The position numbers were made by a program, and so were the translations under genes. From positions 620,001 through 684,000 of the forward strand of contig MU008171.1 of NCBI GenBank assembly GCA_010909165.1: DNA of 64,000 bases. The letters run 5' to 3'. The notes below the pieces were generated by a model that saw nothing but the letters and a program-made list of their open reading frames with translations, did no database searches and was not told the DNA's origin. This DNA comes from Anthoceros angustus (taxonomy: Eukaryota > Plantae > Anthocerotophyta). This document shows positions 9,621 to 45,530 of the stretch, one piece after another; position 1 is the stretch's first letter; each line of letters starts with the position of its first letter.

Positions 9621-9643
9621 CAATGACATCTTCCTGGGGAGAG

Positions 9644-9922
9644 AGTAGCAGTGAAACAAGGTAGAAAGGTGAAAAGTTGAAAAGGTAAAAGCTAAGTTAG
9701 TAGCCTGTTAAGAAGATGCATGTGTTGCATGCTTCATGCAATCTCTTGTTAGAGAGGAATTGCTACGACCACAAATGAAGAGCTGCCTAGAGAGGACTCT
9801 TAGTGATTAGTGGTCCGTAAGAATCCCTAGATTTAACTGCCTAGTTAAGGTCAGTCAGGATATATAAGGGCTAGAGCAAGGGCTTTGAGGAACAAGTTAC
9901 AAGTTACTCACTCTTTGAGAGA
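9644..9922 (+). repeat. Third, 3'-truncated LTR copy within an internal duplication
   Basis: PPT GGGGAGAG then AGTAGCAGTGAAACAAGG, matching the first ~280 bp of the LTR, then a jump back to integrase 3' sequence. Confidence 0.85.
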
Positions 9923-10340
9923 GGCGAGTTTCAAGTAGGAGACAAGGTGTGGGTGAAATTGAAGAATTTCCCACTGACCTCAAAGTTAAGGCCTAAGTAT
10001 GGAGGACCTTTTCGTAGTTCAAGCGCATTGGAAATGTGGCTTACAAACTGATTACTGAATGGATCTTCTCTCATAATGTGTTTCATGTCTCTTCTTTGAA
10101 ACCATTTGTGATTTCGAAGAGAATGAAGATATGAGCAGGAAGGATTATGTCATCACGGTTCAACACAATCATGGTCTGCGGAGATTGTTGAATTCTGGCG
10201 AGAGAAGTGCCCTCTTGTCGTGGTAATGTACGAGTATCGTAAGGCTTCGTGGTTATGGATCATCACTTGAAGATGTGCAACAAGGATCATGGATGATCTC
10301 GCGTTACGGAGGTCATTGAGGACAATGACATCTTCCCGAT

Positions 10341-10349
10341 GGGGGAGAG
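10341..10349 (+). promoter_or_regulatory. Polypurine tract
   Basis: GGGGGAGAG immediately before the 3' LTR start AGTAAC. Confidence 0.85.
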
Positions 10350-10925
10350 AGTAACGACCGTGAAACAGGTAGAAAGGTGAAAAGTTGAAAAGGTAAAAGC
10401 TAAGTTAGTAGCCTGTTAAGAAGATGCATGTGTTGCATGCTTCATGCAATCTCTTGTTAGAGAGGAATTGCTACGACCACAAATGAAGAGCTAGAGAGGA
10501 CTCTTAGTGATTAGTGGTGCAGAATCCCTAGATTTAACTTAATTTGCCTAGTTAAGGTCATGGATATATAAGGGCTAGAGCAAGGGCTTTGAGGAACAAG
10601 TTACAAGTTACTCACTCTTTGAGAGCGAGCAAGTGTCTTGTTGCAAGCCTGTGTTGAGAGAGGCTGGAGAGCTAGCTAGTGAGCTTGTCATGGAATCAAG
10701 GCGGCGCAGTTGTGAAGCCGATTCCATCGTTGTATTCTTGCAATAAAGCGGCACCTCGAGGAGGTGGCTGCGAGTCGTCGATGGGACGGGCTACTTGGAG
10801 CCTAGTCTTGTGTTGTGAGGTTGAGAGAGCGAGAATCGTGCAAGTCTCTTGTGGAGTGAATTGGCGGTCCTAGACATTGGGAAGCCGACACTTGGCCTTC
10901 CTTCTTGGCGATGAGGGGTGTTACT
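10350..10925 (+). repeat. 3' LTR (576 bp)
   Basis: Matches the 5' LTR; AGTAAC...GTTACT; followed by TSD CGCTT. Confidence 0.93.
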
Positions 10926-18526: not shown

Positions 18527-21432
18527 GTGCACAGCTATGGGGCCCAAGAAGGCGGCGGCGGTCTGGGAGCCGTGGCGCCTGGTGGAGAAGAACATTGTCA
18601 CCAAACGCTACGGTTGGACCACAGGTGGCGGAGGCGGAGGTGGAAGGCAGCACTGGACATCTTCGGTGATTGGACTTTCGGCAGTCGCCGAGTCAGAATC
18701 GCCGGGAAGATGTTGGCGGTGGCCAACAAAGAGGTCCACTTCAAGAGTCTGAGGGAGGACCCCAAGAGATGGACCGTAGAGGTCCTGAGGGCGGGTTACA
18801 ACCGCCCAGTGGAGGAAGTTGGGGGCGTAGTCCCGGAGCCCCTTAAGGTGAAGGGGAAGGTGGAAGCGGCAAGGGCGGCGCTCTTGAGGCCGGGGACGCA
18901 GCGGTCCTCAAACGGGTGGTTGATGTCGGACCTGCTAGACAGGCGGGTGAGGGTGGTGGCAAAGATCATCGTCCATTGGAACATGCTCACCAAGGTGGAC
19001 CACCAAGGTGACAACTCGCTGGTATTCCTCCACGCCCTACAGAGAGAAAAGAGGGCCGACTAGGGAAGAATCATCTTCGCTTGGATCAACCAGGAGGCCA
19101 GGAAGCTGCGCAGTGAGAAGCCGCCCCCGTCGGCGTCATCGCCGTTCCTCATTCATGTGTGGGGGCACCTTAAACTCCTGAAGGAAGGAGAGGAGGAGCG
19201 GGCGCTTCGGAAGGGGTTGGTGGCCCTGCCCGAGGCGGAGCGCGAAGGGAGAGTACCGGAGGCGGAGGGCCGCCCTCCCAAGACCAGGCGAGTCCTGGAA
19301 GAAGAGGATTGGGAGGGAATTCCGGATTCCATACGACTAGAACGGACCCCTCGCCACCCCGAGAAGTATGGGAAGAAATTCCCGCTTCCCTCCTCTTAGT
19401 CCCTCCACCGGAGCACCTTACGCCGGAGGAGATTGTAACAGGAAGGGAGTTGGTGGTCGCGGCACCAGCAAGCCAGCAACCCACAACGGCCCCAGCCACC
19501 GAACCCCGCCGGACTAGGTGGGAGATAAAGAGGAGGAAGACGGCCTCCACCAATGCACCGGACCGCGCGGTCCCTGCCTTGCCACGGAGTGGCGAGGCGA
19601 AGGAGGCCGTGGGAGGCGGAGAGGATGCGGCCAGGCGGGGAGGACAGCGGCAACCCCACCCCGAGCCTGCTCTCACCACGAGGGGCAAGCGAGCCAGCTC
19701 CCGGACCCCCTCACCACCTCCGAACCCCAAGAGAAGGCGGGCGGAGAAGGAGTTAGCGGCCAAGAGGGCCAAGGAGGTGGAAGCTCCGGACCAGAACACT
19801 CAAGACCTGAGGGTCCTGATTGGGTCCGGAGTCCCTAGTCCGGCCTCCCTCCGGACTGCGGTGTGGCGGTCCTTAACGGACCGGGCGGTACCCGAGCCCG
19901 CGGCGGACTTCACGGGAATCTCCCCAGCGGCGGTTGTAGAAGAGACCAGGAGGGTGCTCGCAGCCGTCATGGACGGAGTACTCTGGGGTCTCTGCGGAAC
20001 GGCAGAGAAGACCCAGGAGGTGGAGGCCACCAGAAGACGGATGGTGGAGCTCCAGGGCCAGGCGGAGGCAGCCCAGGCGGCCAAGAGGAAAGCGGAAACC
20101 CTCGCGAAAGTTGAGGAGGAGAAGCACCGGGCGGTGGAGTCGGAGGCAAGGTCCGCCCAACAAGACCGGGCCAGGGTCCTTCAGCTGTGTGAACAGCTGA
20201 AGCAAGCGCAGGAGGCACAAGCAAAGGTAGAGGACCTTTGCAGACGGAGAGAAGTGGCCCAAGAAGAGGCGGAGGAGGCCCGAAGGCAGGCAGAAAGGGC
20301 CAAGGACCTGGCCGAGGCGGCTCGGCAGGAACAGCACCAAGCCTGGGAGGCCCAGGTGAAGGGGGCGCGGGAGGCCGAGGCCCTGGCAAAGACGGACACG
20401 GACCACTACCGGCGGGATCGGAATTGGTGGAGGGAGGCGGCGGGAGTAGCCGCAGCCAACCAGAAGGTCGAGCAGGCGGCGGCGGAGCAAGCACAGGCAA
20501 GCCATGAAGAAGAGAGGGAGGCCAGCACCAGGGAGATGGAGGATCTCCGGGCGCATCTCCAAGGGACGGAGGAGCGGCGTCAGTTACGGAGGATCGCAGG
20601 AGACCTCGGAGCTCTGACTCCAGGAAGCAGTGGAACGAAATGGAATTCTCCAAGGAGAATCATGGACCCTGGCCGAGATAGAGCGACTCAGGCTGTTGGA
20701 GGCGGAGGAGAGTCGATGGCAGTAAGGAGCAGGACATCGCGAACCAGAGAAGGACTTGGAGGAAGCCACGGGCGGGCGGAGTTCTTGACCGCCTGGAAAG
20801 GAGATGGCGGCCCTCCAGGCAAGGATGGATGGCGGAGAGGGCTCAGAGAGGGAGGCCACGAGGAGATGGAGGATCTCCGGCGCATCTCCAAGGGACGGAG
20901 GCGGCGTGAGTTACGGAGGATCGCAAGGAGACCTCGGAGCTCTGACTCCGGAAGCAGTGGAACGAAATGGAATTCTCCAAGGAGAATCATGGACCACGGC
21001 CCGAGATAGAGCGACTCAGCTACATTGGAGGCGGAGGAGAGTCGATGTAAGGAGGCGAGGACATCGCGAACTAGAGAAGGACTTGGAGGAAGCCACGGGC
21101 GGAGTTCTTGGACCGCACTGGAAAGGAGATGGCGGCCCTCCGAGGCAAGGATGGATGGCGAGAGGGCTCAGAGGAGGGCTGGTCCGGTTGCGGAAGCGAA
21201 AGCGTCGTGCCATGGCGATGTTGGCCGAACCACACTTCTGACGGCGGAGGAGGAGCAAGCGGAGGCGGCCGGCGAGGGAAGTGGCGGAGATAGCCTTGGC
21301 GGCCTTGAGAGACTCACGAGACTTCAAGCTGGCGTTCCAGGTCCGGTGGCGGCACTATCGGTGCCTTCGTCGCCCTCCCTCGATCCTTCCGGTCCTTCAA
21401 TGCGGGGTGAGACAGGACCTCCAGTGCCTTGA
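18527..21432 (+). pseudogene. GC-rich transposon-associated ORF (N-terminal globular region, Pro/Arg-rich linker, long E/A/R/Q coiled coil), frameshifted
   Basis: Overlapping ORFs 18537, 18527, 19157 and 19309 form MGPKKAAAVWEPW...KRAD*GRIIFAWINQEARKL...coiled coil. It resembles accessory ORFs of plant Gypsy elements (inference); no gag/pol motifs were seen. Confidence 0.5.
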
Positions 21433-21548: not shown

Positions 21549-23811
21549 AACATCATAATTTTTGAAGGGGGTGAATAATCTCGAAGGGGGTTTTCTGTAA
21601 ATAATCTCTGAAGGGGGTTTTTGATGGGCCCTAAAACAGCGTTTTTAAGGCATTCCGGAAAACATCTCCGAAAAAGGTGTCACCCACTAAAGTTCCTACT
21701 TTCCATCCAAAGAATGTTTGTGTCGAATGGTGGTTGCAAACTCGAACCTAGGGAATGATGCAAAGTAGGAACGGTGAGGAAGGCCGTTCTGGGAAGGCAT
21801 GTAAACTTCGATTTTGGGATGGAAATGTGGTTTTGTTATGACACCACAAAAGCCACGGACGGTATTTCCTAACACGAAACATTTGGAACCGGACTTACAA
21901 CATTAACTGGGACCCGGGAAAAAGCGAGATTTCATTTCACTCATCCCGAGTTCAATCCATCGTCATCACTTGGTCCGACTTCTCCTTGTCATCACTATCT
22001 TGACACTTTGACTTTCATGTTGTATGAAGCCACGCAACTCATGAGCTTATCCCTTATCGCTTTTTGTCCACCGCATACATGTTTCCGTCGTTCAACACAA
22101 ACCCATGTCTGGGATGGTATTTCATTCACTTACCTCCTGTATGTTTTTGGGTAATGGACCTTATTCCCTTTTTCCTCGGCATTGGACGGATGGGTTACCA
22201 CTCTGGCGGACTATGTATTCCACATATCTCCTTCGCATCTGTGCTCGGTCCGATACGGTGGATAAGAAAGTGAGGTCGTGGTGCATCTAGCTTCACGTCA
22301 ATGACCTCCCAATCCGAATGGCACATTATGTGTCCGTATTGCAGCCTTCGGAAAACATCCCTCTCGGTTTTTATGTCCCCATTCATCCGCCATTTCCACG
22401 TTGCCTTCCGCATTTTGATATGCCCCAAGTACATATCACGTGGGAGGTCCCTCAATAATGCCTCATCTAGCAAAGCTTCATCGGCACTTGAAGTGGTCTA
22501 TGATCCACGCGTGAAAACCACTTCCAAGAATGACTAGCACTAGCCCAATGTTATTCTCCACAATGATAGCAATCTCCTTCGGTCCACCCAAAAGGCTTCC
22601 CACCACTTGTACTCTTCAAGTCACCTATGGGCGCAAATCTTTTAACCCTTCACCAAATGGGCCACACCTTCCATCGGTGATAGGATACTGCCGTTCCTTC
22701 TTGTCCCCCCTAGCTTCACCCGTATGCACCGTAGGATGGTGCTAAGGGAGGCGCCGGCCGGCGCCTCCCCACATGGTCTCTCATGGGCGTAGGCGCCTCC
22801 CCTAACACCACGCCCATGGGCGCCGGTGGTCCTCCCCACCATGGGCCGGCCGGCCCCTAGCACACCGCCCATGGCGCGGCCGGCCCCCCCCACCGCCATG
22901 CCTTGCCCATGGGCCGTGCCCCCCCCCCCACCGCCATGCCTTGCCCATGGGCGCCGGCCGGCGCCTCCCCCACCGCCCATGGGCTCCTCATCATCTTCAA
23001 GAAAATATATATTTAGCGCCTCAATAATGCAACTTGGGATTGTTGGTCAAGTGTTTGGGAAATAAGTGTAATGAATAGGTTTTGTGTTCAAACCCGTATC
23101 TAACAACTCAATTTTGTTGATTTTAAGGATGCTTGCATGGGCGCATGGGCAACTAACTTTGTTCATTTAAGGACGTTGGCATTGCCTTAAAGCCCAAGTG
23201 GTTGCATTGAGTGCGGAAGGTTGAAGACCACATTGGCGACCTTTTGGATGAGGTCGTGAGACCTAGATCTTTGTGGCGATCGACACGTCGACGGGCCCAA
23301 GAATGATACTATTGAAGGCGAGCAAGCAATGGAGGAGAGCGACAACGAGGCGGAGGATATGGACCGCCTCGAATATGGCGGTGGTACTTGACTCGGTTTG
23401 GCGCAAGGCATGGATGAGTCGCCGCACTCTTGAATGACTATTGTCGATGATGACCACTTCCTCCTTTAGCGATTGTTTGTTGCAATGTTCTCACGACCAT
23501 TGAAATAAGACTCCGCTAGTATGATTGTTTTCATTGTGTTCCACCACTTGAAAGTAAAAGTTTTCGGTTGTAATAAACATATGAAAATGGCAGCCTCTAT
23601 GCATTCTACAAAAGCAGCGGGCCCACACCCCTGTGCTCCAGGTTCTCGGTGTAGACTTGAAAGTGCATCTTTTATCAAAGATATGACCTCGGAAAGGGTG
23701 TGTGCATTATCAAAGTAGGGCACATATCTTTGTTCTAGGAAAGGTGTTCTTCGTGACAAGGGGTGTTGTCTCGAGAGAATTCTTGTATTCCCCCTTTAAA
23801 ATTATCGTGTT
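21549..23811 (+). mobile_element. Non-autonomous TIR element related to the 31172-43109 transposon (copy 1)
   Basis: Termini AACATCATAATTTTTGAAGGGGGTGAATA and TATTCCCCCTTTAAAATTATCGTGTT. Contains decayed transposase 3' sequence (22000-22650, homologous to 41550-42200), a GC minisatellite, and the MTase-gene 3' tail (23190-23460, homologous to 31560-31830). TSD imperfect (GTGC/GTCT). Confidence 0.85.
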
Positions 23812-28014: not shown

Positions 28015-31000
28015 ATGGATCTACAACTGAATAATTTGGACGCCTGGCCGAACGAGGAGGAGGAGGTGGGAGAGATCAAAGGCTATGCAGGACCCAAGAG
28101 GTTTAGCAAAGAGCTGATGTTCGATGTAAATCTACGGAGGTCTACTGTAAAAACATCCACCTACAACACCCAAAATGTCACCTACGAGCCCCACCAGGAC
28201 CAACTTCGCCCACATTCATGCATACAAATCTAACTGCAAGAAGATAAACCATTTCCGAATTGTTTGGGGAGAAGACAGAGCCTGCAACATGGCCTACATC
28301 CTACAATTCACCGAATTCACATCCTTGGCCTCCACTGCACCGGCCTAAGGCTGAGGCGAGTCCATCTGTAGGAAGACATCCCATCACGATATCAGCACAA
28401 ACAATTGCTGATCAAGCGCACAAAATGTTTGACTGGATATAGGAGTCTAATAACCTGAGCTAAGAAGTTGCTTCCTTAGCCTTCCTTGCAACGGTTCGGG
28501 GAAGAAGGTGCTCCACCATGAACCCTTCATCATGGACCTTCTTATGCAAGATTTCTTCCATCACCTTTTCATCACATTCCCCACTATCATATCCTGCCTC
28601 ATGCGAGGAGGAGGAGGTGGAGAGATCAAAGGCTATGCGGGACCCAAGAGGTTTAGCAAAGAGCGATGTTCGATGTAAATCTCTGAGGTCTCTGTAAAAC
28701 ATCCACCTACAACACCCAAAATGTCACCTCGAGCCCCACCAGACCAACTTCGCCCACATTCATGCATACAAATCTAAGCAAGAAGATAAACCATTTCCGA
28801 ATTGTTTGGGAGAAGACAGAGCACAACATGGCCTACATCCTACAATTCACGAATTCACATCCTTGGCCTCCACTTGCAGTGACCTAAGGCGATGAGTCCA
28901 TCCATCAGCAGGAAGACATCCCATCACGATATCAGCACAAACAATTCTTGATCAAGCGCACAAAATGTTTGTTGGATATAGGAGTCTAATAACTTTGAGC
29001 TAAAGTTGCTTCCTTAGCCTTCCTTGATTCGGGAAGAAGGTGCTCCACCATGAACCCTTCATCATGGACCTTCTTATGCAAGATTTCTTCCATCACCTTT
29101 TCATCACATTCCCCACTATCATATCACCTCATGCGGAGGTTCCAGTTGTTGGGTATCCGACTTCCGTCACGTCTTTTGAGGACCCAAAGATGGAGCTGTA
29201 GTTTCACTTTCCTTCCAGTAAGCTCTAAGCTTTGTCACCCACTTCCATGCTTGGAACCCACATACTTAATCTCTTCAAAGGTGGCCTGTCTATCAAACTT
29301 GGCCTTGAACTTGTCCATGAACTGCTTTTGCCCTCCAAACCCAAAGCACGAATATGGCTTACTGTCCACATTTTTTCCTCGCTGTAAGGCAGCGAGCTTC
29401 TGTTGGCTAGGAGCAATGACACCGTCTAGCTTGTCCTTCTCTTGTTTCAATAGAACATCCCAGTACTCTCGTTTAAGGCTCTTACGCGTACTTTCTTGCT
29501 TTTCTTGCCCTTCAAGAAATGCCTAGCCTCCTTCCTCAAGTTGTTCTTCCAATGCCTCAAGCCGGGCCACTATCGAGCCACAACACGTTGAAACGTCCGT
29601 GGACCAAATATGGTCTGCCTAATTGTGCTTTCCACAAGAAGGACATCAACATCAGAGTGTTCCCAGAAATCAGCCAACAGTGGGTTGCACAAATGACGAA
29701 TGGCAAAGTGCACCTGATCCTTCAGTGGAAACCAAGATGGCGAGTCTCGGAGAATATAACCTGCATAGCCGAAAAAGCATGATCAGATGGATATAAATAG
29801 GGCAATCCTGAAAAAATAAGGCCTGGACATCTAAACCTAAGGACTTTCAGGCCTGAAATACCAGGCCTGTTACCAAGGCTTGATTTACAGGTCTGAGCTA
29901 CAACCTATTTGTAGCTTAGACCCTGAATTGCCACAAGACTACTCTGGAAAAAATAAGAAACTGTCCACGCTTACCGGATTCATGCAAGTGAGAAAGGAGA
30001 ACCTCATGCTGTAAGTCCCAAATCCTCTTTCGTTTTGTATCGTTCCGCTTGTTGCCCTTCAACTCATCATCAAACACACTGCTGGAATTTCAATACCATC
30101 CCCAACATGAGCATCAACGGGGAGATGCCCAAATTCAGGGGACATGCATCTTGCCCTCTTGTATCGGTGCATCCTCGTCCTCTCGCACAAAGTGTGGGAT
30201 GAACGGGATCCTTGGGGTGCTCGGGACCACAACGTCTGATCCTAGGACGGTACCTGTGCCGTTAGCAATCTCACCTTGTGGTTTAGGGGGAGCACAAGCA
30301 TTTCCCTCCTGGTAATCACTCTGAGACTTCCCCTCAGCTAGTGCTTTTGCTCAGGGAGTGCATGTCCCGCCCTTGCTAGCACGCGGACACATTTGTAACT
30401 CCGATCATCATAAAGCGGGCGGATCTCACATGTCTTGGCGACCTCTTCCCAACTTTGCCTCCTTGTTCCCTTACATGGTGAGTGTGCTTTTTGTGGCCAT
30501 GCAAAACTCAGGACTTGCAATGTGTTCATCAACAATCGCCTTTGGAGATTCCGGCAGTCCCTGCATGGCATAGACCCATTCCGGCATGTGTGCCTTACCG
30601 CTCTTTGACATCCCAAAGGGATGGTCCATGTTGTCAACTGAATGGGCGTCTTCTAATGCCCACGCATCAGACGCCCCAAAGCCATCTTGGGTTGCTATGA
30701 GATGTCCCCCGTCCCCACTAGCAACCTTACATGAGCGTTTAGGGTTGTTTTCATCATCAATCGCATCGAGGTATTGTGCACACTTGTCCTTGTGAAAACC
30801 GGCTGAGTCTTCGTCGTCGTCATCATCTTCTGGATCCTGCCTTTGCTCTGATTTTTGCGGCGCGGGTTTGTGGTGCTGCAGACACCATGCCAGGCTCACC
30901 CTTGATGCGCTTGGACCGTCCTCTCCCACCTCGAGCTGCCCTCCCAAGCCCATCCATGCCATAGTCTCCAAGTTCCCTATTGTTGACCGTCCTTTTGTTG

Positions 31001-31171
31001 CACCTTGCCGTTCAGTTCATGCATGAACTAAACTGCCACTCTTCTGTGGTCAACAACCGATTGAGTTATTTCTGAACAGAGGGCCCTGATGTATGCATTC
31101 CCAATTTGAGGCCTCTGCAGTTAACACAAAATTTGCAGTTAGTGATAAGGGCGAAAGCACCTACAAGCATT
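28015..31171 (-). mobile_element. Left part of an 'outer' element interrupted by the 11.9-kb transposon; decayed minus-strand ORFs
   Basis: 31080-31171 joins seamlessly to 43114 onward and is homologous to 34870-34960. Contains acidic and coiled-coil ORF remnants and a ~550-bp tandem duplication. Outer termini not found. Confidence 0.65.
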
Positions 31172-31812
31172 AACACCATATACCTTCAAGAGGGGGAATA
31201 TACAAACCCTCTTCAGTTGCTGGTGGACCCTCTTGACACACATCGTACCTTTCTGGAAACTATGATTTTTTCACGTTAGTGACGTATGTCCACCCTTGTC
31301 CGATAGATCCCATTTTCGAAACAACGGTTTCACGCGGTTCCATGTGTGCGTGTAATAAACTATCGCCGGCTGGCCGGCGATTGTTGGACCCTCGTGAAAG
31401 CAATGCTCCAAACTGGAGGAAAGAAAATTAAAATTCCGCCACTTGAAGAAGGTTTTTTAACTGCAAACTATGGGAGTGGCCAACCTTGAACTGTATACCT
31501 ATATCCGACCACAAAACTTATCGTTTAATACCATCAGACCAAATACAGGACATCTACAATGGATCATTGGGAGAGCTCAACTGCGACTCGTCTCACTGTC
31601 ACATCCACGAGTCTAAGACAACGCCGAGTTTCTAATCGCTCATCTTACCGTCTTCAAATTCGTCGTTTTCTTCCAAGGCCTTCTCGTCTTCGTTCACATC
31701 ACTTGGGGTCGTCAGCTGTGAGTGCCATACATCATCCAACGTTTGCTGCCCATCTTCCAAAAGTTCACTGTTGTCGTCGCAACCTTCGGCACTCAAAACA
31801 ACAGCCTTGAGA

Positions 31813-32731
31813 CTATCTTTTGATACATACCTCCTTTGCCCAGAATTGTGATGGTCCTCGGCGATGCGGTTGAAATGTAAGTTCTTCCTCTGCATCCGGA
31901 AGGACCTCATAACCATGTATTCGTTGAGGAATGTACCCTGCACATCTCAAATCTGCCTCAACTGCAATGCAATTGCGTCCACTCAGGACTGCAGCAAGTG
32001 TGGTGGTCCCGCTGCCCGAACATGCATCAAGAACCCAGTCCCCTTCCTTTGAGAAGGTCCTTATCAGTTTCATAAGAAGACCCGTGGGCGTTGATAAGGG
32101 CATACCACAAGTTTGTCATTGGGCGGTACACTGTTTCTTCACCACGATGGCGTGTCCTATAACCGACCTCCCATTGTTGAGCGTCCGTGCATAGCATTCG
32201 GACGGGGCTCTATCCTTTGTGCTTGTGTCTTTCGAGACACCATCCCGATGATGTACTCCACAATCTCAAACCCGCCTCTGTCATTATGCATGTTGGTCTT
32301 ATCCCATATGAAGGATACCAATCCGCCTTTCCACATCCATGTCGCATGGATTCCACGGCAGTGTGGGCTTCTTGACCCCATGCATCACTATAATGCGAAT
32401 TCTTCACTTGTTGTCTTTTCCTCAAAGCTACGAAACTCTGTGCATCATTGCCATGTCCACCCGCTTATCCATAGGGCCAATGTCAAACCCTGGAGCGTCC
32501 ATTACAGGCGTGTACCCCTCGTCCTCGAAACCCCGCATGTCAAGAATATTTCTTGCCTCCACAGTATTGAACATTTGTTTGTCCTTTGGAAGGCACGTTA
32601 AAATGTTAAGACCTTCTTCCGGTCCTTATTATAAAGCCCTTTGCTCGTTTTCAAGTCCTTTCCGATTTGTTGACTTCAAATATGAAATGGCGGAAGTCAT
32701 CCGGCGCCAAAACCTCAACGTCCTTTAGTTG
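31813..32731 (-). CDS. DNA N4-cytosine/N6-adenine methyltransferase domain (beta-class, N6_N4_Mtase-like), frameshifted in this assembly
   Basis: Ordered motifs: FDI(-)PYG catalytic-like motif (32469-32488, needs a 2-nt correction), IWDKTN...VEYII (about 32300), CPYQRP (equivalent to HPTQKP, about 32100), GLLMKLIRTFSKEGDWVLDACSGSGTTTLAAVLSGRNCIAVE (SAM-binding motif I). Confidence 0.88.
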
Positions 32732-33799
32732 CTGCAAATTAAAAACAAAACCACGTCGCTGGTATAGAGGCGCCCTCGATCGTGCATGGTGGAGGCGTGG
32801 CGGGCGGCGCCCTCCGCGCAAGAACTATGAATAGAAAGTGTTTCTCACCTTTCCGCAAATCTTATTTGAGCGTACTGACTATCTCATTGCATGATGGGGA
32901 TACTCTTCGCCTCCTCGAGCATGAGCACCCAAGATGTTTCGCCATGGCCACTTGGATGATGTGAAATTTCTTGGGAGGTGATATCATCATCCATGCCCTT
33001 AGGTCAATAAGCCACCCAAGAACCTTCTCCGTTCTTGATATTAGTATCATTGCGCATTCACGTGAGGTATTGTGAAGCGATTTCCAAGGCTTTGCAAGCA
33101 TATCCTTGGCTTCACATATGCGATCGATTTTCTTTGACTCTTGATGACCTTCCGTTTTCCTTTGCCTTTCTTGCTCGTGCCCACCGCGACATGTTTCTTT
33201 TATAAGCTCGGCTTCCCACTTTGTAAAAATCTTATCCACATTCTCCCATACCGCCTCACCTTTGCCAAATCTTTGTTGAGCCTTACGACCGGCGCCGTTG
33301 CATGATGGGGATACTCTTCCGCACCTCCTCGAACGATGAGCACCCAAGATGTTTCGCCCGGCCACTTGGATGATGTGAAATTTCTTGGGAGGTGATATCA
33401 TCATCCATGCCCTTGAGATCAATAAGCCACAAGAACCTTCTCCGTTCTTGTGTATTAGTATCTTGCCGCATTCACCGTATTCCTTGAACGATTTCCAAGG
33501 CTTTGCAAGCATATCCTTGCTTCACATATGCGATCGATTTTCTTTGACTCTTGATGACCTTCCGTTTTCCTTTGCCTTTCTTGCTCGTGACATGTTTCTT
33601 TTGCTCAAGCTCCGGCTTCCCACTTTGTAAAAATCTTATCCACATTCTCCCATACTCGCCTCCTCGCTTTGCAATACACAAAATATGAGTCCTGTTGTCC
33701 ACTTTGTTGCTTATACATCGCCGTCTTCGCCCCTCATCGTCGTCAATCAACCCTAGCGGTTTATGCATTAAACTTCCATGCCATGGTCATCACTCCGTC

Positions 33800-34200
33800 C
33801 GTTTCGATAATCATTTCGTCCCTCAAATATCGACTTGCTCAATGAAATTCATTTTCTTCCTCTGTCGGACAACACATTGTGATCTGTTGCAAGAATTAGC
33901 ATTTCTGCCGTCACCCACAATACACATGGGCCTCCACGTCTTGGCGAGTCTTCCCGGGACATATATCGCCAGTGCTTCATCTGCATAGGTGTGGTTGCCT
34001 CCAAGAACCCCATGACGTATTTTTTGCCTGAACTTGTCCCAATCAAGTTTGCTCGGTCTTCACACTCTGCGGGTCAATCATACATAATAGAGGCAATCGC
34101 CTTCCTCAATCCGCCTTGAAATCACGCGTGCCAAGTAATTTGTCCATGCTTCGTCAACCCTCCGTGTCGAGCATCGGTGTGAGGTGTGATCTTGGCGAAG
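33800..34200 (-). CDS. ParB/Srx-like domain remnant upstream of the methyltransferase
   Basis: RVDEAWTNYLARVI ... PLLCMIDP ... VLGGNHTYA (33988-34008; compare the ParB DGxHR/GGNH motif) ... LILATDHN, spread over shifted frames. Confidence 0.55.
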
Positions 34201-34858
34201 GTTCTCCAACTTCACCAAAGCTCTCCAAAACAACCTTTTTGGAATAGGCCGATTCCCTAATGCGCGTTAGGGGTCTTCATCCCGAATAGCATCGCTAACC
34301 GCTCCTTGTCCGTTGATACATGGGAGATGGTATGTCCTCCAACTCCTGCGCCTTTTGCATACTATTGGTTTTTCTCCTGGTCCACTAGCGCCTCCAAGCT
34401 CTCTGACGACTCCTCTACTTTGATGCATGGCCCTCTCGCCTTCCTTTTCCTTTCTTTGCTCTTATTCCACTCACATCCTGCATGGAGGGAAGGAGAGGCG
34501 CCGGCGCCCCTCTTGAGTGATCACCATGATCTGTTGCCCGGGCAGTGCTTCCGAGAATGACCCGGCCGGCGGCCGGCCGGCGCCTCTTCCCCACAGCAGC
34601 CGTTCCACGCTGGGTCATACCTCCCCTCCTCGGAAGGACCGCAGCCCCAAGGTCTCCACGAGCGCGGATCTCGAACCTGCTGCATCCGATTGATCATCAT
34701 CATGTGCAGAATATCGAATAGGGCCATCGTCTTCATCTTCGGTCCAAGCTCGCTTCCTTCTTCACAATCATCCATGAGATGTTCCTCCTCAACCGGCCTT
34801 GTGCTCGAGTGCGCCTTAGGGACATGACTCTTACATGCTGAACAACCGATTGTGTGAT

Positions 34859-35536
34859 TTACGCACATAGGCCGATGTATGCATTTCCAATTTGAGGCCC
34901 TGCGGTTGACACAACATTTGTGGTTAGAGACCAAGCGAAATCACCGAAAACATACGAGGTCTCACTACCCCAAAATGCCTTCGAACAATTCGCTTGTTCT
35001 CGTCTACATTCGCGAAAGATCGCACCCTGGGGCTCGCATTTCTTGATGATCGTTGTTGAACACGAGATCAAATGCCTGTATAGCTCGGGCCCTTGTGGCA
35101 CTTCATCAAACTCACGTGGCTTTGTTATACAGGCGATTGCGATGGGTCTCCTTGACACATATCCGGTTCGCCACACAACCCACCCAGCCCTCGCTCGCTG
35201 ATTAGGCAAGGCATCCTTGTATCCCATGATCCACAACTTGAAGAGTGGTGTCCAGAAAATACCTTCGTCCTCTGGCTCTAATTCTTGAACCAACATCCAG
35301 TCCTTATCCAAAAGAGGTGTGGAATCCATCTGGGCTCCAAGCCTTCGTATGTAGACAGTCTCCTCAAAGCTGTAAGGGGATGGAATAGGCACTACGCGCT
35401 TCTGTGCTTTGTCTCCCTTGTCACCAGTAGGAAGACCTTTGGTTGTGCTAGCCTTAGCGGAAGTAAGGCTCCCGGATTTCGCCTGATTCGCAGCTCCTAC
35501 CAATTGCGACCCAATAAGGGGGCCCACTTGTTCCAT
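34859..35536 (-). CDS. Conserved domain of unknown function (element cargo), paralogous to 43198-43797
   Basis: 225-aa ORF. PIPSPYSFEET...NQRARAGWVVW is identical at 70 of 73 aa to the outer-element copy. Confidence 0.7.
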   Translation of the reverse strand: MEQVGPLIGSQLVGAANQAKSGSLTSAKASTTKGLPTGDKGDKAQKRVVPIPSPYSFEETVYIRRLGAQMDSTPLLDKDWMLVQELEPEDEGIFWTPLFKLWIMGYKDALPNQRARAGWVVWRTGYVSRRPIAIACITKPREFDEVPQGPELYRHLISCSTTIIKKCEPQGAIFRECRREQANCSKAFWGSETSYVFGDFAWSLTTNVVSTAGPQIGNAYIGLCA

Positions 35537-36299
35537 CGCTCGGTCCCGACCTCCGCGCCTTGAGGTGCATCCATGGGCGCCTTGGCAGATGCCTTCCCTT
35601 CCGCTTTTGATCTCCTCACCTTACAGCAAGGGGTTAGGGGATCGATTCTATCGCCTGGTCCTTCTTGCTCCTGCGACCCATTGCCATCTGGAAGGCCACC
35701 CAAACCAAAGTTGAAGACCGCAATTCTTGCTCGAGAGGTGGAAGATGGAAGAGCAAAACCCGTGTCGACCTTGGATTAGAGGATGTTGGCAAGGGAGGGC
35801 GTGGCGGCGCGATGGCGTGCAATTGCTCCGGGCTTCACGGTGGCGCGAGGCAGGCTGGCGGCGGCCGCAGCCTGGCGCCGTCACGCGAGGCGAATGGGGC
35901 ACTCTTCAGGAAGTGTTCCCTTCGAGGTGTCTCGATGCACACCTCGACTTACAAACACCTTTGCTCCAGTAAAGAGATAATCCTGTTTCTTCCTAGGGCA
36001 ATAATAACCCCATCGACATTAGGGTTGAAAGGATGCTCAAACATCATGTCCAGCGTATCCACATGAAGGTACCAGCAAAACCTAACCACAGCTCGGAAAA
36101 CTTCGTGTATGGATGGGAGCAGGTAGAACTATTTTTCATTCGCAGCAAGTTCCACCAAACCAAAGTAGGAGTACCCACAAGTATCACCATCATGGTAATC
36201 AAAATCCCCATTGCGCCACAATCATTCCATGTGGGATGCCGAGCATAAATGCAATGTAATTAAAGCCGCCATTCCTTGTCCCACTAAGCATATCTAAGC

Positions 36300-39200
36300 G
36301 ATCGCTATTAACGTCCATTTGTCCCGAATGATTGACCCAAGTTTGCCTTAACCTTGCACGGCGGCCGCAAGGGTTTCAGGTTTGCCGGCCCGACACTTCA
36401 GTTCGTCTGCTCGTTTTCCAGCCAGCCTTCACAATCATGTTGAATGCTACTCATCCTTTGGATGGAGATGAGGTTTGGATTGTTTTGTTGTCAATTTGCC
36501 GATGTTTTGGGCTTCTGTAGATGCTGACGGACTGTATTCCATCCGTCGGGTGAATCGCCTCCGCAGGCAATGTTTTGCGACGAAGCAGACTGCTCGCAAT
36601 TCCGAAGACAACAGCGCGCGGAGGATGTTGCCCAAAGGAGGAGGATACTAAACGTGCCTCAAATACAGTCTCGGCAGGTGGTGTGTGGACCTCTGCCTTC
36701 CCCAAAAGGACAACGCATTCCCGAAGGTATAACTAGGAGAGAATCGGCCGTGCATTCCTACTTGCTTGAATTCCGTTCCTACATACCAATGCCTTTGCTT
36801 GCATTTGCAGCTCGTTCCAGTGGTGGCCACAATGGGCGCCGGTTCATCTTCACCATCTTGGGTGTGCCTCGGACAGAAAACCTCAATTTGTATGCCGCCT
36901 TAGATAGGAGCCCGTCGCTCATTGCATGAGAATGCACAAAGTAGTGGACATTACGCCGAGTAGGAGGGCCTCAAGCATTGAGGCGTGACTTATTTCCTAC
37001 TATGGATGGAACGGTAGAACTATTTTTCATTCGCAGCCGCAAGTTCCACCAAACCAAAGTAGGAGTACCCACAAGTATCACCATCATGGTAATCAAAATC
37101 CCCATTGCGCCACAATCATTCCATGTGGGATGCCGAGCATAAATGCAATGTAGTTAAAGCTGCCGCCATTCCTTGTCCCAGCTAGCGGCGCCGCATATCT
37201 AAGCCTGATACGCTATTAACGTCCATTTGTCCCGAATGATTGACCCAAGTTTGCCTTAACCTTGCGGCCCGCAAGGGTTTCAGTTCGGCCCGACACTTGA
37301 GGTCTCTGCTTTCCACCCCTTCAAACATGTTGAATGCTACTCATCCTTTGGATGGAGATGAGGTTTGGATTGTTTTGTTGTCAATTTGCCGAGTTTTGGG
37401 CTTAGATGCCGACGGACTCTATTCCATCCGTCGGGTGCATCGCCTCAGCAATGTTTTGACGGGCGCATCGCTGCACCAAGACAACAAGGAGGATGTTGCC
37501 CAAAAGGAGGAGGATACTAAGCGTGCCTCAAATACGGTCTCGGCATGTGGTGTGTGGACCTCTGCCTTCCCAAAAGGCAACGCATTCCGAAGGTATAACA
37601 GGAGAGAATCAAACCGGTCTGCTTCCTACTTGCTTGAATTCCGTTCCTACATACCAATGCCTTTGCTTGCATTTGCAGCTCGTTCGATGGTGGCCACAAT
37701 GGGCGCAGGTTCATCTTCACCATCTGTTTAGAGGGGTGTGCCTCGGACACCGAGAAACCTCAATTTGTATGCCGCCTTAGATAGGAGCCCGTCTGCTCGA
37801 CTGCATGAGAATGCACAAAGTAGTCGACACTGTTCTGCCCGAGCAGGAGGGCCTCAAGCATTGAGGCGTGACTTATTTCCTACTGTGGATGACAGTGGGA
37901 AAGGTATCCTCCTGGAAAGCAGGTCAGCGACTTCAGACGAGGAGGATGACGTCTTTCAAACACCAGGAGGTGGACATGCTCCGCAATCATACCATCCCAA
38001 GCCATTGAGCGAAAGCTTGATAGCAACAAAGGCTCTTGTTTCAACTGGTCAAAAGGCACGGTGTCGATGAGGAAATGCGGCGGAAGGCTGCGTCTCTTGA
38101 TTTCCAAGCCTGTTGCAACCAAATGTGTGTTCAAATTGACTATAGAAAGGTTGCGGGAGCGAGATACCGGTTTCTACGAATGGGCGAGCAGAGCGGAGAC
38201 ATTTCGGAATCTCTTGTTCACGTCGATCGCATGGCCACAATGATAAAGTTGTGACTCATCTATGGGGTCGGAATGCGATCTTGCCTCGAGCCTTCGCAGG
38301 TATATTGCATTGGCCATAGTAGGTATGAGGAGTCAAGAGAAGGGTTATTGCACATGCACCGTGGATGGCTTTAGAGCAAACCCTAAGCATACATATGCGA
38401 GGTGCAATCGCGTGGATGGACAACACATTCTCATGGCGGAAAGGCTCCCCAATGTTGATGTGTTCAATCTTCCGGACACATTTACAAAGTTCAAATTTGG
38501 GCAAAATATAAACGGCAATGTGAGGGTTCCATCAGCGGTTTGTCACCTATGCTTGGTTTTGAAACTTTGGAGGAGAACTTCAGGTGAAGATTCCAAAGTC
38601 CAACAGTTCTCCACGTGCTCGCGCGATTAAAAGCGACAATTAGAAACACGATCGCTAAAGTCGACCAAGGTATTCTCCAATCCTTTCGTGAGTACATTAT
38701 GTGTCCTTCTATGTCCTTTGTTCGGCACACTCTCCATGTCTTAGGTGGTTAGTACATCGTGTTCTCGTAATTTGAGTGTGGCATGTTGAAAGGGACGTGC
38801 TCATTGAAGTAGGCTACCATGTCGTTCGACCAATGAGTGGGCGCCGGTGGCGCGCCCACTCTTAGCACCTCTCGGGTTTACGCTTGTGCATTCTATGGAA
38901 GAGGCGTCCCGGTGTAGGGAAGAGGAGGAAGTGTCTTGGCCAACCTAGGAAGCTTTGGGTGGGAAGGTAAAGGTGTCTCGGGAAGGTTAGGGTAGTAAGA
39001 AGGAACGTTTTCCATGCTCCTCATGGCATTGCACTCCATAGTAAGAGGTATGGCCGGCAGTGAACATACGGCTTTGTCGAGGCCTCCTCACGGATAGAGG
39101 CCGTGCGCCCTCCTCTCCAAGATGCAAATTCTACAATGGTAGGCGGTTTGCGGTGTTAGTGGATAGCCAGGTGGTATGAGGATGGCGTCTTTCAAACACC

Positions 39201-42200
39201 GGAGGTGGACATGCCCGCAATCATACCATCCCAAGCCATTGAGCGAAAGCAGTAGCAACAAAGGCTCTTGTTTCAACTGGTCAAAAGGCCTTGTGGTGTG
39301 CGATGAGGAAATGCGAAGCGGGCGTCTCTTGATTTCCAAGCCTGTTGCAACCAAATGTGTGTTCGAAATTGACTATAGAAAGGTTGGGAGCGAGATACCG
39401 GTTTCTACGAATGGGCGAGGCGAGAGACATTTCGGAATCTCTTGTTCACGTCGATCGCGTAGACAATGATAAAGTTGTGACTCATCTATGGGGTCGGCGA
39501 TGCTGCCTCGAGCCTTTTGCAGGTATATTGCATTGGCCATAGTAGGTATGAGGAGTCAAGAGAAGGGTTATTGCACATGCACCGTGGATGGCTTTAGAGC
39601 AAACCCTAAGCATGATCTACATATGCGAGCAATCGCGTGGATGGACAACATTCCTGTTCATGGCGGAAAGGCTCCCCAATGTTGATGTGTTCAATCTTCC
39701 ACATTTACAAAGTTCAAATTTGGGCAAAATATAAGCAATGTGAGGGTTCCATCAGCGGTTTGTCACCTATGCTTGGTTTTGAAACTTTGGAGGAGAACTT
39801 GGTGAAGATTCCAAAGTCCAACAGTTCTCCACGTGCTCGCGCAGGATTAAAAGCGACAATTAGAAACACGATCGCTAAAGTCGACCAAGGTATTCTCCAG
39901 AATCCTTTCGTGAGTACATTATGTGTCCTTCTATGTCCTTTGTTGCTGCACACTCTCCATGTCTTAGGTGGTTAGTACATCGTGTTCTCGTAATTTGTGT
40001 GGCATGTTGAAAGGGACGTGCTCATTGAAGTAGGCTACCATGTCGTTCGACCAATGAGTGGGCCTGGCGGCGCTCCTCTTAGCACCTCGGGGTTTACGCA
40101 GCTTGTGCATTCTATGGAAGAGGCGTCCCAGTGTAGGGAAGAGGAAGTGTCTTGGCCAACCTAGGAAGCTTTGGGTGGGAAGGTAAAGGTGTCTCGGGAA
40201 GGTTAGGGTAGTAAGAAGGAACGTTTTCCATGCTCCTCATGGCATTGCACTCCATAGTAAGAGGTATGGCCGGCGGTGAACATACGGCTTTGTCGAGGCC
40301 TCCTCACGGATAGAGGCCGTGCGCCCTCCTCTCCAAGATGCAAATTCTACAATGGTAGGCGGTTTGCGGTGTTAGTGGATAGCCAGGTGGTATGAGGATG
40401 GCGCCGCGCCTTTCACCTAAAAGTCCACTTTTGTTTCCTTTTACCGTATCTGGTTTATACGGTTTTGGTGGGCGACAGCAAGCATTCGGCCTAAGGGTTG
40501 AGCACGCGATCTCATGTTGCGGATACGGGTGCCATACCCGATCTTGGGTGTTCCATGTTCTGCAATGATCCTATGTCGCAATGCCGTGAATGTCTACGCT
40601 GTAACACCAATTGTTTGCGAGAAATATCGGTGCCTTAGATGCCCATCGAGATCGGCTGCTGGCGAGCGAAGATGACAAAGCATCGCAGCAAGAGCTACGT
40701 GGAGCCCCACAAATATATGTTATTGGCCATCGATGGAATGGACCAAGAAAGCGAGCTTAGCATTTCTTGCGGTGGTCAAGAATTTGGATGAAGAATGTCG
40801 ATTTCGGCCGTTGTGGGGTGCATGATTCACAATTACACTCACAAAGCAAGGGCATATTTGCATTATGCCAACCTCCAATGACGCCTAATTTGACTATAAA
40901 CATCATTCAAGATGTTATCCACAATTATGATGGGGTCTGCCTAAAGTGTTGTACTTACAACTGGACAACACTTGCCGGAGAACAAGAACCAACTACTCTT
41001 TGCGTATCTCAACATGTTGGTAGACATGGGAACATTTGAGAAAGTGAAGGTGGGCTTCCTGCTAGTTGGGCATACTCATGATCAAATTGATCAGATGTTT
41101 TCATGCTTCTCTAAAAGCTTGAAACACAAGGAAGCGCACACTCTGCCCGCACTGGCAAGTATTATCAAGGGAGCGTACACTCCAAGGCCGGAGGTGAAGA
41201 TACTGACTGAAGTTCCCGACTTCCGGAAGTATGTATGGCCAATAAGACGGGGGGATGGGCGGCAGACGTATTCGGCAGTTGTGAGTAAATTGAATAATCT
41301 GTCGTTCCAGCATCAATTCAAGATCACACGCGAGGAGAAACCGAGCGGTCGTGATGTCGAGGGAGTGACTCAACATCGTTGTGTGGGAAGCGAAGGAGGC
41401 TTGGAGTTTTTGAAGTTTGTGCCACAGGAGGTCATAACTGCGGCTCCTTTGTTAGCCTTGCGGGCTAGAGATAAAAAGGCTCGGCCGCTTGTCTCACGAG
41501 GCGTTGCTTACTTGAGCGAGGGTTATCAGCTCCGGCCTTACGTTACGCGGAAGAGTACACATGGTGGGAGGAGTTGGGTTGACCAGAAGAAATTGTCAGT
41601 AATTGTGGACAACCATATCGGGTTGGTTCTGCGACCATGGAAGTGGTTTTCGAGAGTGGAGGGCGACGCTTGAGTGCCCTTATGCATGCCCGATGCGGCT
41701 TTCTTTGAAGCGCTCTGTGAACTTCCACAACGCGATATGTATTTGGGGGCGTATAAAAATTTGGGCAAGCAACAAGAAGATATGACACGTTTGAATGGCG
41801 ATATTACGGAGATCAAGAAAGGAATGTTCATAGCAGTCCGTGTTCAATGAGACACACACAGACCATTTTGGATTGGAAAGGTCATAGATGTGAAGTTGGA
41901 GTCGCCCAAACCTCACTTCCTCGTTCATTGGTATATGACCGAGCATACGGATGCATATGAGGGAAGATATGTTGAGGAATATATAATTCCGGAAGCGGTA
42001 CGAACATGGCTTCAAGGTAGGGAAGAAAGGAAGCAAATCCTTGTATACCAAAAATATTCAACAGTCTTTGTGAGCAACGGTAATCCTTTATTATGGATTC
42101 GTCTTTGAATGCTCGAAAACATTTATATGTTGTTGACAAGAAAGCGATAAAGGATAAGTTGAATGAATTGCGTGGGTTTATTCACATCCGAAAGTACCCA
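36300..42200 (+). CDS. DUF7869-like DDE transposase gene (spliced and frameshifted); core ORF 40972-41673
   Basis: VKIPKSNSFSTCSR (about 38590-38625), donor GTGAGT at about 38687, IDGMDQ (40729-40746), LYLQLDNTCR-ENKNQLLFAYL, FLLVGHTHDQIDQMFS, C-terminal FWIGKVIDVKLESPKPHFLVHWY. The 5' boundary is uncertain. Confidence 0.85.
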
Positions 42201-43109
42201 CGAGGATAGTGATGACCATGGTGCGGGGCGGTCCGGCGATGGGGAGTGACCTCCGGAGATGAGTAAACGTGCTTCCATGGAGAAGGAATTGGGAGAGGAG
42301 GCAATGGTTCCGCATCTTGAGATAAATATAGGGTTCTAGCTTCACCCGGTCTAAATTCCAGTACTCCTTGTCCGAGCCTTTGTTAGGGTAAGCCAGCGTG
42401 AATCATGTTTGGCTTTTGGTCCATTACCACCTCAATGCAATACAATACCGTATCCGTATATGTGGTTTGCAACACCAATAAATTAAGTATGTGTTTGGGC
42501 GGTTATCTGCCCCAAGATTATAGTGGCGTGTTGTCCATAGCTGGACAAATTTGTCGAGGATGATAGATAGGGCGTTGTTGCGATCATCCCAACCATCTTC
42601 GATCCGTAGGTGGTGTTTGTTCTTCAATTTGTGGTAGCGGAGGCGAATCGGTAGTGACCTCCATAGACAAGGAGAGGCCGGCCGCGCTGCTCCACTCAAG
42701 GCCGCCAAGCATACGGTCGGGTTGACCCGATCATGACCTCTACCCTTTGCCAAACCCTTGACATCAAAACAAATTTGCAGAAGACTATGGTGTTTGCATG
42801 CCAACCGTACTTTCTTGCGTGACGGACCCAAATCCGGGTTCACTGGCATCCTTTCCCCTGCATTAACGGTCAGCACGGTGGGTCTTAATTTGCCCTCATC
42901 AAATGGGTAAAGAATTTCGAGCACCCTTCCACGGCGTGTACCCATATTGTAAAAGGGGGACAACGTGTATGGGACACCCTGTTTTTCTGTGGTTCTTTTA
43001 GCAGAACATGCTATTCGTCGTTTTGAGACCCATGTGTAACCCCCTTTGGCGCATATTTTCAAGAAAACCCCCATCATGTATATTCCCCCTCTTGAAGGTT
43101 TATGGTGTT

Positions 43110-45530
43110 CATTGCAGAGTTCTCACTAGCACCAGAATGCATTCTGAACAATTACCGTTTGCTCTCGTCTGCATTCGCGAAAGATTTGCACCAGCCTCTA
43201 AGGCTCACATTTCTTGATGATCAGGTTGTTGAACCTAAGATCAAATGCCCTGTACAGCTCCGGACCTTGTGGCACTTCATCAAACTCCTGTGGCTTCGTT
43301 ATACAAAGAAGTTGCGCCAGTGGGTCTCCTTGACACATGTCCAGGTTCGCCCAAACAACCCATCCAGCCCTCACTCGCTGATTAGGCAAGGCATCCTTGT
43401 ATCCCATGATCCACAACTTGAAGAGTGGTGTCCAGAAAATACCTTCGTCCTCAGGCTCCAATTCTTGAACCAACATCCAGTCCTTATCCAAAAGAGGTGT
43501 GGAGTCCATCTGTGCTCCAAGCCTTTGTATGTAGATAGTCTCCTCAAAGCTGTAAGGGGAGGGAATAGGCACTACGCGCTTCTATGCTTTCTCTCCCTTG
43601 TCACCAGTAGCAAGACCTTTGGTTGTGCTGGCCTTAGCGGAAATAAGGCTCCCGGATTTTGCCTGATTTGCACCTCCAACCAATTGCGATCCAATTGCAA
43701 GCTGGGGCCCAGCTTGTTCCACCGCTACTGGTCCTACACCTCCGCGCCCTTGAGGAGCATCCATGGTCGCCCCTGCGGCTGATGCCTTCCCTTCCACGCC
43801 GCCGCGATCTCCTCACCTACATGGGGTCGGGGATCGAGATTCTCATCCCCAGTCTTTTTGCTCCTGCGACCCATTGCCATCTGCTGGAAGACCACGAGGA
43901 AGACATGATGAAGAACGCAAGTCCTACACAGACAGGTAGAAGTTGGATGAGCAAAAAACGAAGACTGACCTTTGTTCAAAGAAGGTTGGCAAGGCAGGGC
44001 GTGTGAGCGGTATCACTGCACAATTGCTCCGGGCTTCACAGTAGTGGCGACAAGCTCCGTGCTTCTGGTAATCACGAGCGAATGGGGCACTCTTGGTGAA
44101 GTGGTTTCATTCGCGACGGTGTTACCGATGCACATCCCGGCTTGCATACACACGTTTTTTTGGATCGTAAAAAGGTATAACCTTGTTTTCTTCACAACGG
44201 CAAGTATAACCCCAACGAACATAGGGTTTCTAGCATGCTTCAATATCATGTTAATGCGTATCCCCATAAAGTCGGTGTAGCATAGGCAAACCCTGGCTCC
44301 CGAACAATCGTATTTCTGGATCGGAAATAGGTATAACCCTTTTTCCTTCACAGCCGCAAGTATGACCCCAACAAGAATAGGGTTTAAAACATGTTTCACC
44401 ATCAAGTTAATCAAAATCCCCATAAGGTCGACATCATTCCGTGTTGCCATGTCCAAACATTGTCCACATGAACAGACAAAAGATTTTCCGCTTGCCTACA
44501 CCAACATCTGCCATGACCTGCACATTCCAAAAATCCTCCATGTCATTTACAGAGTGCGTCGCAGCCCATCGAGACTCCTCCTTTGATGGCATCCTCGCCC
44601 ACTTCGCCACAAATGCCATCCGGATGGGCTTCGCGCCTCGACGCCCGAATGGATAAGTACCTGGCATGCGAGCATGCGAGCATCCATGACCTTCTTGTTA
44701 GAACTGGCCACACCCTTTCCCTCGAGCTAGCTCTTGCACTCCTGCCTCCATTGCCTTCCTCCACTCAGAAAACCACATTCCAGTCGTGGTGTCTCTGTCG
44801 CCCTTATTCCTTACACCTCTGCCTCCTTCACCCGTGTCCTTACAAAATAGTTGCGCGAGCGCAGGCAAGCGGAAAATTTCTTCCATATGAAATCCAAGTT
44901 CTTGATGTGAGGGAACTCCCCTGCAACCAAGTCCATCGAGTGAGTCCATAGCCTTGCCGTCTTGCGTTTTCCAACTGTGCCCCATTTTCATCCGTGTGAT
45001 GACCAACTTATGAACGCGTTTGCCAAATGCATCCTTGTCATCCTCTCTTCCTCGTCCAAACATTCTCCCCGGCCGGTGTACGCGGCGTCGCCATGACCTC
45101 CACCTTCAGCAATTACCTGAGACCTCGTCCTTCCATGGAGGTGCAAGTGCTTTCAATGCTTCCGATAACGGAACCTCATCCGGCTTCAAAACCTCATATT
45201 CCTAGTCCGCGACCGTGGCATCGGGCTCCCCCTCGGCAGCGGCCATGCGGCGGTGCCATAATGGGAGAAAATGCTGCTGCACTCCCGAGTCTTCCTCCAC
45301 CTGGACTTGCTCCAAGGGAGGCAGCCCGTCCTCTGAGTCTTCCTCCAACGGAGGCATACCCCCGGTCTCCTCCTCGCTCCCATATATGCAGCCGTCATCC
45401 TCCAAATGCACCTCCTCGAGCGTCCCCTCCTCAGTTTCCCTCCACATAGCCATCTTGCTTGTGCTCACGATGATGAATCTGCCTGGAGCTGCAAATACAG
45501 CTGCTTGCAGCTCAGCAGATCGTTGAAGGC
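43110..45530 (-). mobile_element. Right part of the 'outer' element, with the paralogous cargo ORF (43198-43797) and further unknown ORFs
   Basis: 43114-43800 is homologous to 34950-35640; 44000-44450 resembles 35900-36260; acidic ORF remnants run to about 45500. Confidence 0.7.

Follow-up and report, generated by a model that had tools for sequence, protein, structure and literature searches.

A Sola1 transposon with a putative ParB-like/DNA methyltransferase accessory gene in a probable land-plant genome

DNA methylation in land plants is regarded as essentially 5-methylcytosine, and transposons are regarded as targets, not as carriers of DNA-modifying enzymes. A locus at positions 31172-43109 of the 64,000-nucleotide stretch of DNA analysed here (the window) raises the question of whether a transposon of a probable land plant carries a DNA methyltransferase of its own, and what such an enzyme would do. 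An earlier note on this DNA had described the locus as a single transposon holding a transposase gene and a bacterial-type amino-methyltransferase gene. The reading that we favour, with a probability of roughly 0.6, is that of a Sola1 cut-and-paste copy with a ParB-like/methyltransferase accessory gene, the protein product of which would be recruited to, and would mark, the DNA of its own element.

We first consider the limits of the element. It is bounded by two terminal inverted repeats (TIRs) of 33 nt that differ by one mismatch, at 31172-31204 (+ strand; starting with AACACC and followed by short CCCTCTT subterminal repeats) and at 43077-43109 (− strand); no such pair was obtained in 100 shuffles. 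CATT stands immediately outside both TIRs, at 31168-31171 and 43110-43113, as the two copies of a target-site duplication (TSD). The flanks were found to be about 77% identical to the interior of the element itself: 31038-31161 (−) corresponds to 34827-34945, and 43117-44444 (−) to 34956-36232. When the two flanks were fused with a single CATT, they were colinear with the element interior near 34945-34956 across the junction. This paralogous empty site therefore shows that the insertion was precise and duplicated about 4 bp of the target. The TIRs and the CATT duplication of the earlier note were thus recovered, and the target of the insertion was a fragment of a diverged relative. That outer relative is a fragment only, the rest of the window being without methylase or transposase similarity.

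On the + strand, Pfam placed DUF7869 (PF25273) at 40945-41670 with E=1.5e-30, and a frameshift-tolerant alignment to four DUF7869 proteins showed that the core reaches back to 40663. This core (40663-41670, +) contains the blocks DGMDQ (first D at 40732-40734), LQLDNT (second D at 40964-40966), ENKN and VGHTHDQIDQ (third D at 41089-41091), with 4-6 apparent 1-nt shifts between 40746 and 40978. The triad is probably D-D-D, the third D lying within QIDQ. A transposase tail at 41851-42223 (+) is kept in non-autonomous relatives and in a locus of the liverwort Riccia. In the supplement of the paper describing Sola1-1_Ec32, an element of the brown alga Ectocarpus, the transposase shows MDGANQ, VQVDNTVAENKN and VGHTHIQIDQIFSCF in the same order as in the window; DG..Q, DNT..ENKN and VGHTH.QIDQ.FSCF are common to the two proteins in a comparison of motifs, as distinct from a full alignment or tree. 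Sola1-1_Ec32 was classed as Sola-1; its TSDs are 4 bp long, its termini read AACCG, and its best blastp match is Sola1-1_PPa, a moss entry of Repbase (PMC12477816). The terminus of the window element likewise begins with AAC. Three features of the Sola1 superfamily, namely a 4-bp TSD, TIRs and, by its motifs, a homologous D-D-D transposase, were found here. Because motifs, 4-bp TSDs and AAC termini are shared with Sola1-1_Ec32, we take DUF7869 to be the Sola1 core and the element, on this comparison, to be a member of the Sola1 superfamily.

The accessory gene lies inside the same TIRs, on the strand opposite to the transposase, and the two modules are divergent, as the earlier note had proposed. 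Pfam identified N6_N4_Mtase (PF01555) at 31816-32115 (−) with E=4e-11 and 43.6 bits, against a cut-off of 26.7, over profile positions 165-212. Followed from its 3′ end along the − strand, the gene consists of an acidic C-terminal tail (frame 31635-31946), the last 43 residues of which are kept at 51% identity in a non-autonomous relative at 58990-59127; an exon with motif X (PYQRP) and motif I, the S-adenosylmethionine (AdoMet) site DACSGSGTT (31816-32117, with an apparent 1-nt frameshift near 32082-32088); a methyltransferase middle block (32235-32312; FIWDKTN ... EYIIG) that matches plant homologues; the motif IV region (32476-32514; YTPVMDAPGFDIG as assembled); a conserved linker module (33039-33257; VWENVDKIFTKWE ... 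KDMLAKPWKSL) common to Ginkgo and Riccia proteins, which recurs at 33617-33675 through a tandem duplication of about 414 bp; a ParB-like region; and an orphan, lineage-specific N-terminal domain. Motif IV (32476-32514), the middle block (32235-32312) and motifs X/I (31990-32117) thus follow one another in the permuted order of the beta class, and the AdoMet-binding motif I (F-x-G-x-G) is present as VLDACSGSGTT. The closest solved structures to the methyltransferase family are M.RsrI, CcrM, DpnA, MboIIA and PvuII, and the D-L-P-Y of a prokaryote-like relative aligns with the D-P-P-Y of M.RsrI. Judged from these motifs, the accessory gene carries a beta-class (RsrI/CcrM-like) amino-methyltransferase fold.

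Do both genes belong to one mobile unit? Nested transposons abound in the window, and the element too lies inside a relative, as would also be expected if a methyltransferase-bearing element and a Sola1 element were nested or adjacent, with the TIR pair belonging to one only. In Riccia, moreover, the two genes stand on the same strand. Such a chimera is nevertheless very improbable, given a single TIR pair with a matching TSD, the same pairing of genes in the Ectocarpus Sola1 element, and two deletion derivatives in the window. These derivatives, at 21549-23806 (−) and 58527-60832 (+), are non-autonomous, about 2.3 kb long and 81% identical over their length, and have related termini, AACA.CATAATTTTTGAAGGGGG.GAATA (AACATCATAATTTTTGAAGGGGG), and GAAGGGGGT subterminal repeats. 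In the copy at 58527-60832 the tail of the methyltransferase gene adjoins the left end and the transposase tail the right end. Since both tails are kept at opposite ends, both genes must have been in one mobile unit in its ancestor. The 4-bp flanks of the derivatives match uncleanly (GTGC/GTCT at 21549-23806).

The activity of the methyltransferase turns on motif IV. As assembled it reads D-A-P-G-F; in a read-derived contig with three more bases it reads D-V-P-R-G-F, in one open frame that runs through the next strand. The earlier note had suggested that the element marks its own or host DNA with N4-methylcytosine (4mC) or N6-methyladenine (6mA), and this claim is weakened by DAPGF in the window and DVPRGF in the reads as compared with DPPY. 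A dead fold would explain the change: the transposon would be the same, with a catalytically inactive methyltransferase domain that senses AdoMet or binds DNA as a scaffold, in the manner of METTL14 beside METTL3, and no 4mC or 6mA would be made. In this clade motif IV has R where the aromatic residue would stand, and in Ginkgo it has H; the glycines of motif I are kept, and a degenerate motif IV is a known pattern in inactive partners such as METTL14 (PMC4738411). Against it, motif X (PYQ[KR]P) is conserved, as are the D and P of motif IV, fern and liverwort relatives retain D-x-P-Y-G, and an arginine may likewise stack on the flipped base. We consider a dead fold possible and clearly the less probable of the two.

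The distribution of the variant bears on the same point. D-L-P-R-G was found in three unlabelled relatives that are mutually 35-50% identical and D-I-P-H-G in two Ginkgo paralogues that are 58% identical, while D-A-P-Y-G occurs in the fern (Adiantum) relative, D-V-P-Y-G in one Riccia protein and D-[IL]-P-Y-G in metagenomic relatives. Among these relatives the D and P of motif IV are fixed, and the aromatic position is R or H in some plant lineages. Because R or H persists across deep divergence, the variant looks selected and not decayed. In a 22-row maximum-likelihood tree of the methyltransferase domain with an unresolved backbone, only the D-L-P-R-G clade, a D-I-P-Y-G metagenomic clade and a weak group of Adiantum and Ginkgo separated. 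We prefer, at slightly better than even odds, an enzyme that writes 6mA or 4mC with an atypical active site, since the AdoMet site and motif X are conserved.

A further explanation is that the accessory gene is a decaying passenger in a copy that is dead, non-autonomous and mobilised in trans, its frameshifts and stops being real. The methyltransferase gene as assembled does have several apparent frameshifts and stops, and the transposase core has the shifts given above. The quality of the assembly, however, argues otherwise. Some ten adjacent tandem duplications, measuring 0.3-1.2 kb, occur in the window across unrelated repeats (outside the element, for example, 1694-3238, 4506-6533, 7222-9222, 9206-10625, 20511-21178 and 28053-29135), and in each pair of units small indels outnumber substitutions. 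The long terminal repeats of a Gypsy element (1124-1679/10367-10925) differ by 12 mismatches versus 25 gap openings, two 1.2-kb units inside the Sola1 element are about twenty 1-5-nt indels and a handful of substitutions apart, and a comparison of the window with short contigs assembled from this organism's own DNA reads gave 21 substitutions versus 38 gap letters. A read contig over 32281-32562 (word depth 43) has seven small indels relative to the window; when these were applied, three stops and two frame changes around motif IV gave way to one open frame. A flanking copy of the orphan domain, described below, combines about ten shifts with a dN/dS (ratio of nonsynonymous to synonymous divergence) of 0.24, which is the pattern of assembly error. 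We concluded that indel errors abound in the assembly, which looks like a noisy long-read product, real copy-specific indels being also possible. The frameshifts in both genes, and probably also three duplications inside the element, are therefore not readable as decay, and we consider a decaying passenger improbable. With so many small indels in the assembly, the intactness of the window copy is itself undecidable. A contig joint that steps back by 415 was rejected as evidence of tandem duplication, as 33391 and 32977 are homologous positions in the two units and the contig is colinear with one of them. More broadly, such indel noise makes "dead copy" calls and frameshift counts unsafe across the genome.

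The same reasoning applies to the length of the element. The earlier note had described one unit of 11.9 kb; its bounds stood, in that TIRs and TSD enclose the whole, and its length is probably inflated. Within the assembled 11.9 kb, three stretches are adjacent tandem duplications (32844-33662, 36108-37891 and 37942-40403; about 2.5 kb together) that look like assembly noise; without them the element would probably measure closer to 9.4 kb.

The part of the accessory protein that would find the DNA is the ParB-like region (33794-34096, −), with VLGGNHTYA.EAL, VYCG.T.AEMLILATDHN and KKMNFIEQV. In a frameshift-tolerant alignment with the ParB-like region of a Ginkgo homologue it scored 79, as against 43 +/- 5.6 for shuffles. 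Common to the two regions are a GG.H..A box, then L...EA..LA..(D/E)(H/N)N and a helix, which form what we take to be the pattern of ParB N-terminal domains. An Atlas search gave ParB_N at 0.87, a lead only. We consider it probable, from these likenesses, that the region is ParB-like. Upstream in the gene lies the orphan N-terminal domain, an open frame of 253 codons (34862-35620, −). Its frame is also present in the right part of the disrupted relative (43117-44444), where it is readable only with about ten 1-2-nt shifts and where 107 of 116 residues are identical in the best block. Between the two copies, dS was 0.36 and dN 0.086 over 217 codons, giving the dN/dS of 0.24. The orphan domain is, on this measure, a real coding region under selection in two element lineages. 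A word-indexed search returned no homologues of it, and its best Atlas neighbour stood at 0.61. The landing site of the element falls in the orphan-domain region of its own relative, which may be chance; were the ParB-like protein to tether the transposition machinery to DNA of the family, such an insertion might also be a hint of local homing.

Several results weigh against the reading of a self-marking element. Both genes as assembled have many frameshifts and stops, and nothing from a single tiny RNA run matched the stretch. (D/N/S)PP(Y/F/W) was not found in any minus frame of the window; with a motif IV devoid of its aromatic residue, catalysis, and with it the writing of 4mC or 6mA, is unproven. 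In the ParB-like part, Pfam gave no ParB match in the window piece, DUF6551 was seen in three Ginkgo paralogues below the cut-off (E=0.003-0.009), and neither PDB sequences nor, by tblastn, phages gave a match. An AlphaFold2 model of the Ginkgo ParB-like region from a 4-row alignment had a predicted confidence (pLDDT) of 40 and was unusable, and a single-sequence model of the orphan domain (pLDDT 41) was too poor for use. No parS-like repeat array was found in the window element. Thus, of the module of orphan domain, ParB-like region and methyltransferase put forward in the earlier note, the orphan domain and the methyltransferase fold stood and the ParB-like part is only probable. Finally, two DUF7869 contigs from the Joint Genome Institute (L004 and L005) had no methyltransferase within their flanks, and the cargo is therefore not universal, being lineage-specific within Sola1.

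If the cargo is lineage-specific, how far does it extend? Within the genome of the window, read-derived contigs gave word depths of 30-117 for termini, methyltransferase and ParB-like parts alike. Depths so similar and so high indicate that the module is present in many copies. An exhaustive search with the motif I exon returned 1495 proteins. The whole domain without a canonical motif IV was found annotated in Ginkgo biloba, Adiantum nelumboides and Riccia sorocarpa, and three more examples came from unlabelled sequencing runs. A plant host for the window element is in keeping with these closest relatives. Ginkgo has at least five paralogues; the gene models P0057, P0086 and P0207-P0209, annotated as ordinary genes, encode the ParB-like/methyltransferase protein with D-I-P-H-G, and at least five Ginkgo gene models look like transposon cargo.

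At Riccia locus L003 (CM100799.1) the methylase gene and a Sola1-like transposase are 4 kb apart and on the same strand. No TIR with TSD was found within the 21 kb searched at Riccia loci L001 and L003. About 15 copies of the palindrome CCATGA-N3/4-TCATGG stand in arrays around the ParB-like/methyltransferase gene of L003 (at 5506, 6738-6881, 7974-8337, 10145-10395 and 13525), and recall the parS-like arrays beside ParB-bearing accessory genes of red-algal Plavaka elements.

The pieces can be assembled into a tentative mechanism. By homology, the D-D-D transposase would cut at the AAC termini and integrate with a 4-bp staggered cut. The ParB-like part would bring the accessory protein to the element's own DNA, and the methyltransferase part would then mark that DNA with 6mA or 4mC, the arginine of D-x-P-R-G taking the place of the usual stacking aromatic residue. 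In bacteria, Dam adenine methylation of the ends and promoter of IS10/Tn10 and IS50/Tn5 gates transposition, and the mark supposed here could in the same way tune transposition or transcription. These insertion sequences serve as a working analogy for a self-encoded methylase; the methylase there is the host's, and methylation-sensitive ends in the present element are an analogy only.

A wider form of the proposal is that in land plants, from liverworts to Ginkgo, the Sola1 ParB-like/methyltransferase protein would be an active 6mA/4mC writer on its own element, with R or H in place of the aromatic residue. We regard this extension as doubtful; if true, it would add a transposon-autonomous epigenetic mark to those of plants and a new type of active site to the amino-methyltransferases. 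Short of that, plant laboratories gain a concrete protein with which 6mA/4mC writing or ParB-type self-recognition can be tested, and the conserved D-x-P-R-G poses a clean biochemical question, that of an active variant or a dead scaffold.

Two further parts of the element lie outside these modules. The central region (36108-40403) comprises two of the adjacent tandem duplications (36108-37008/37001-37891 and 37942-39187/39178-40403), their units differing mainly by small indels. An open reading frame of 217 codons from its ATG (227 codons from stop to stop) at 42424-43077 (−) begins where the right TIR ends on its inner side and is directed into the element. It had no Pfam match and was absent from the deletion derivatives and from the Riccia locus; the question is whether it is a third gene or a frame antisense to the transposase tail. 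An Rfam scan of the whole window gave no match.

How new is this architecture? The earlier note knew of no characterised plant element of this design and took the architecture as uncharacterised. This is not so: Sola1 with an opposite-strand ParB-methyltransferase gene is already known from Ectocarpus. Sola1-1_Ec32 (Genome Biol 2025, PMC12477816) shares the Sola1 core motifs, the 4-bp TSD and the AAC termini, together with an accessory gene on the opposite strand that has a ParB-like domain and an N4/N6 DNA methyltransferase domain, for which its authors proposed self-binding and self-modification. It differs in its host, a brown alga as opposed to a probable land plant, in its size (21.5 kb versus about 9.4-11.9 kb here) and in its 282-bp imperfect TIRs (33 bp here), and the window element has in addition the orphan N-terminal domain under purifying selection.

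The Plavaka elements of red algae (Bostrychia; bioRxiv 10.1101/2025.02.11.637652) are giant DNA transposons with accessory genes, PAG2/PAG3, for N6-adenine methylase and ParB-like domains, and that study put forward the idea that ParB binds repeats of its own element. Their transposase belongs to another superfamily, however, and their domains are in two separate genes, one a methylase-SET fusion and the other a fusion of ParB with a 2OG oxygenase. In the ParB-Tls loci of phages and prophages, ParB is associated with N6A/N4C methyltransferases that have been transferred repeatedly into eukaryotes, and that differ from the present one by a canonical motif IV (Iyer et al. 2016, PMC4738411). That paper names no such clade from land plants or borne by transposons, and reviews of eukaryotic amino-methylases contain no land-plant transposon clade. 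Bdelloid N4CMT and Marchantia MpDN4MT1a/b show that bacterial amino-methyltransferases of the PF01555 type can work in eukaryotic nuclei; these belong to the host and not to transposons, their motif IV is a canonical (T)SPPY, their 4mC activity has been demonstrated, and a ParB-like domain is absent from them. Kinship with Marchantia DN4MT1, a host gene with TSPPY, was rejected. Sola elements are known in plants as rare, in a survey without mention of a transposon-borne methylase. Set beside these systems, the window shows that the Sola1 and ParB-methyltransferase design of a brown alga is also present, in many copies, in a probable land-plant genome; its novelty lies in a host that is probably a land plant, in the orphan domain and in the altered motif IV.

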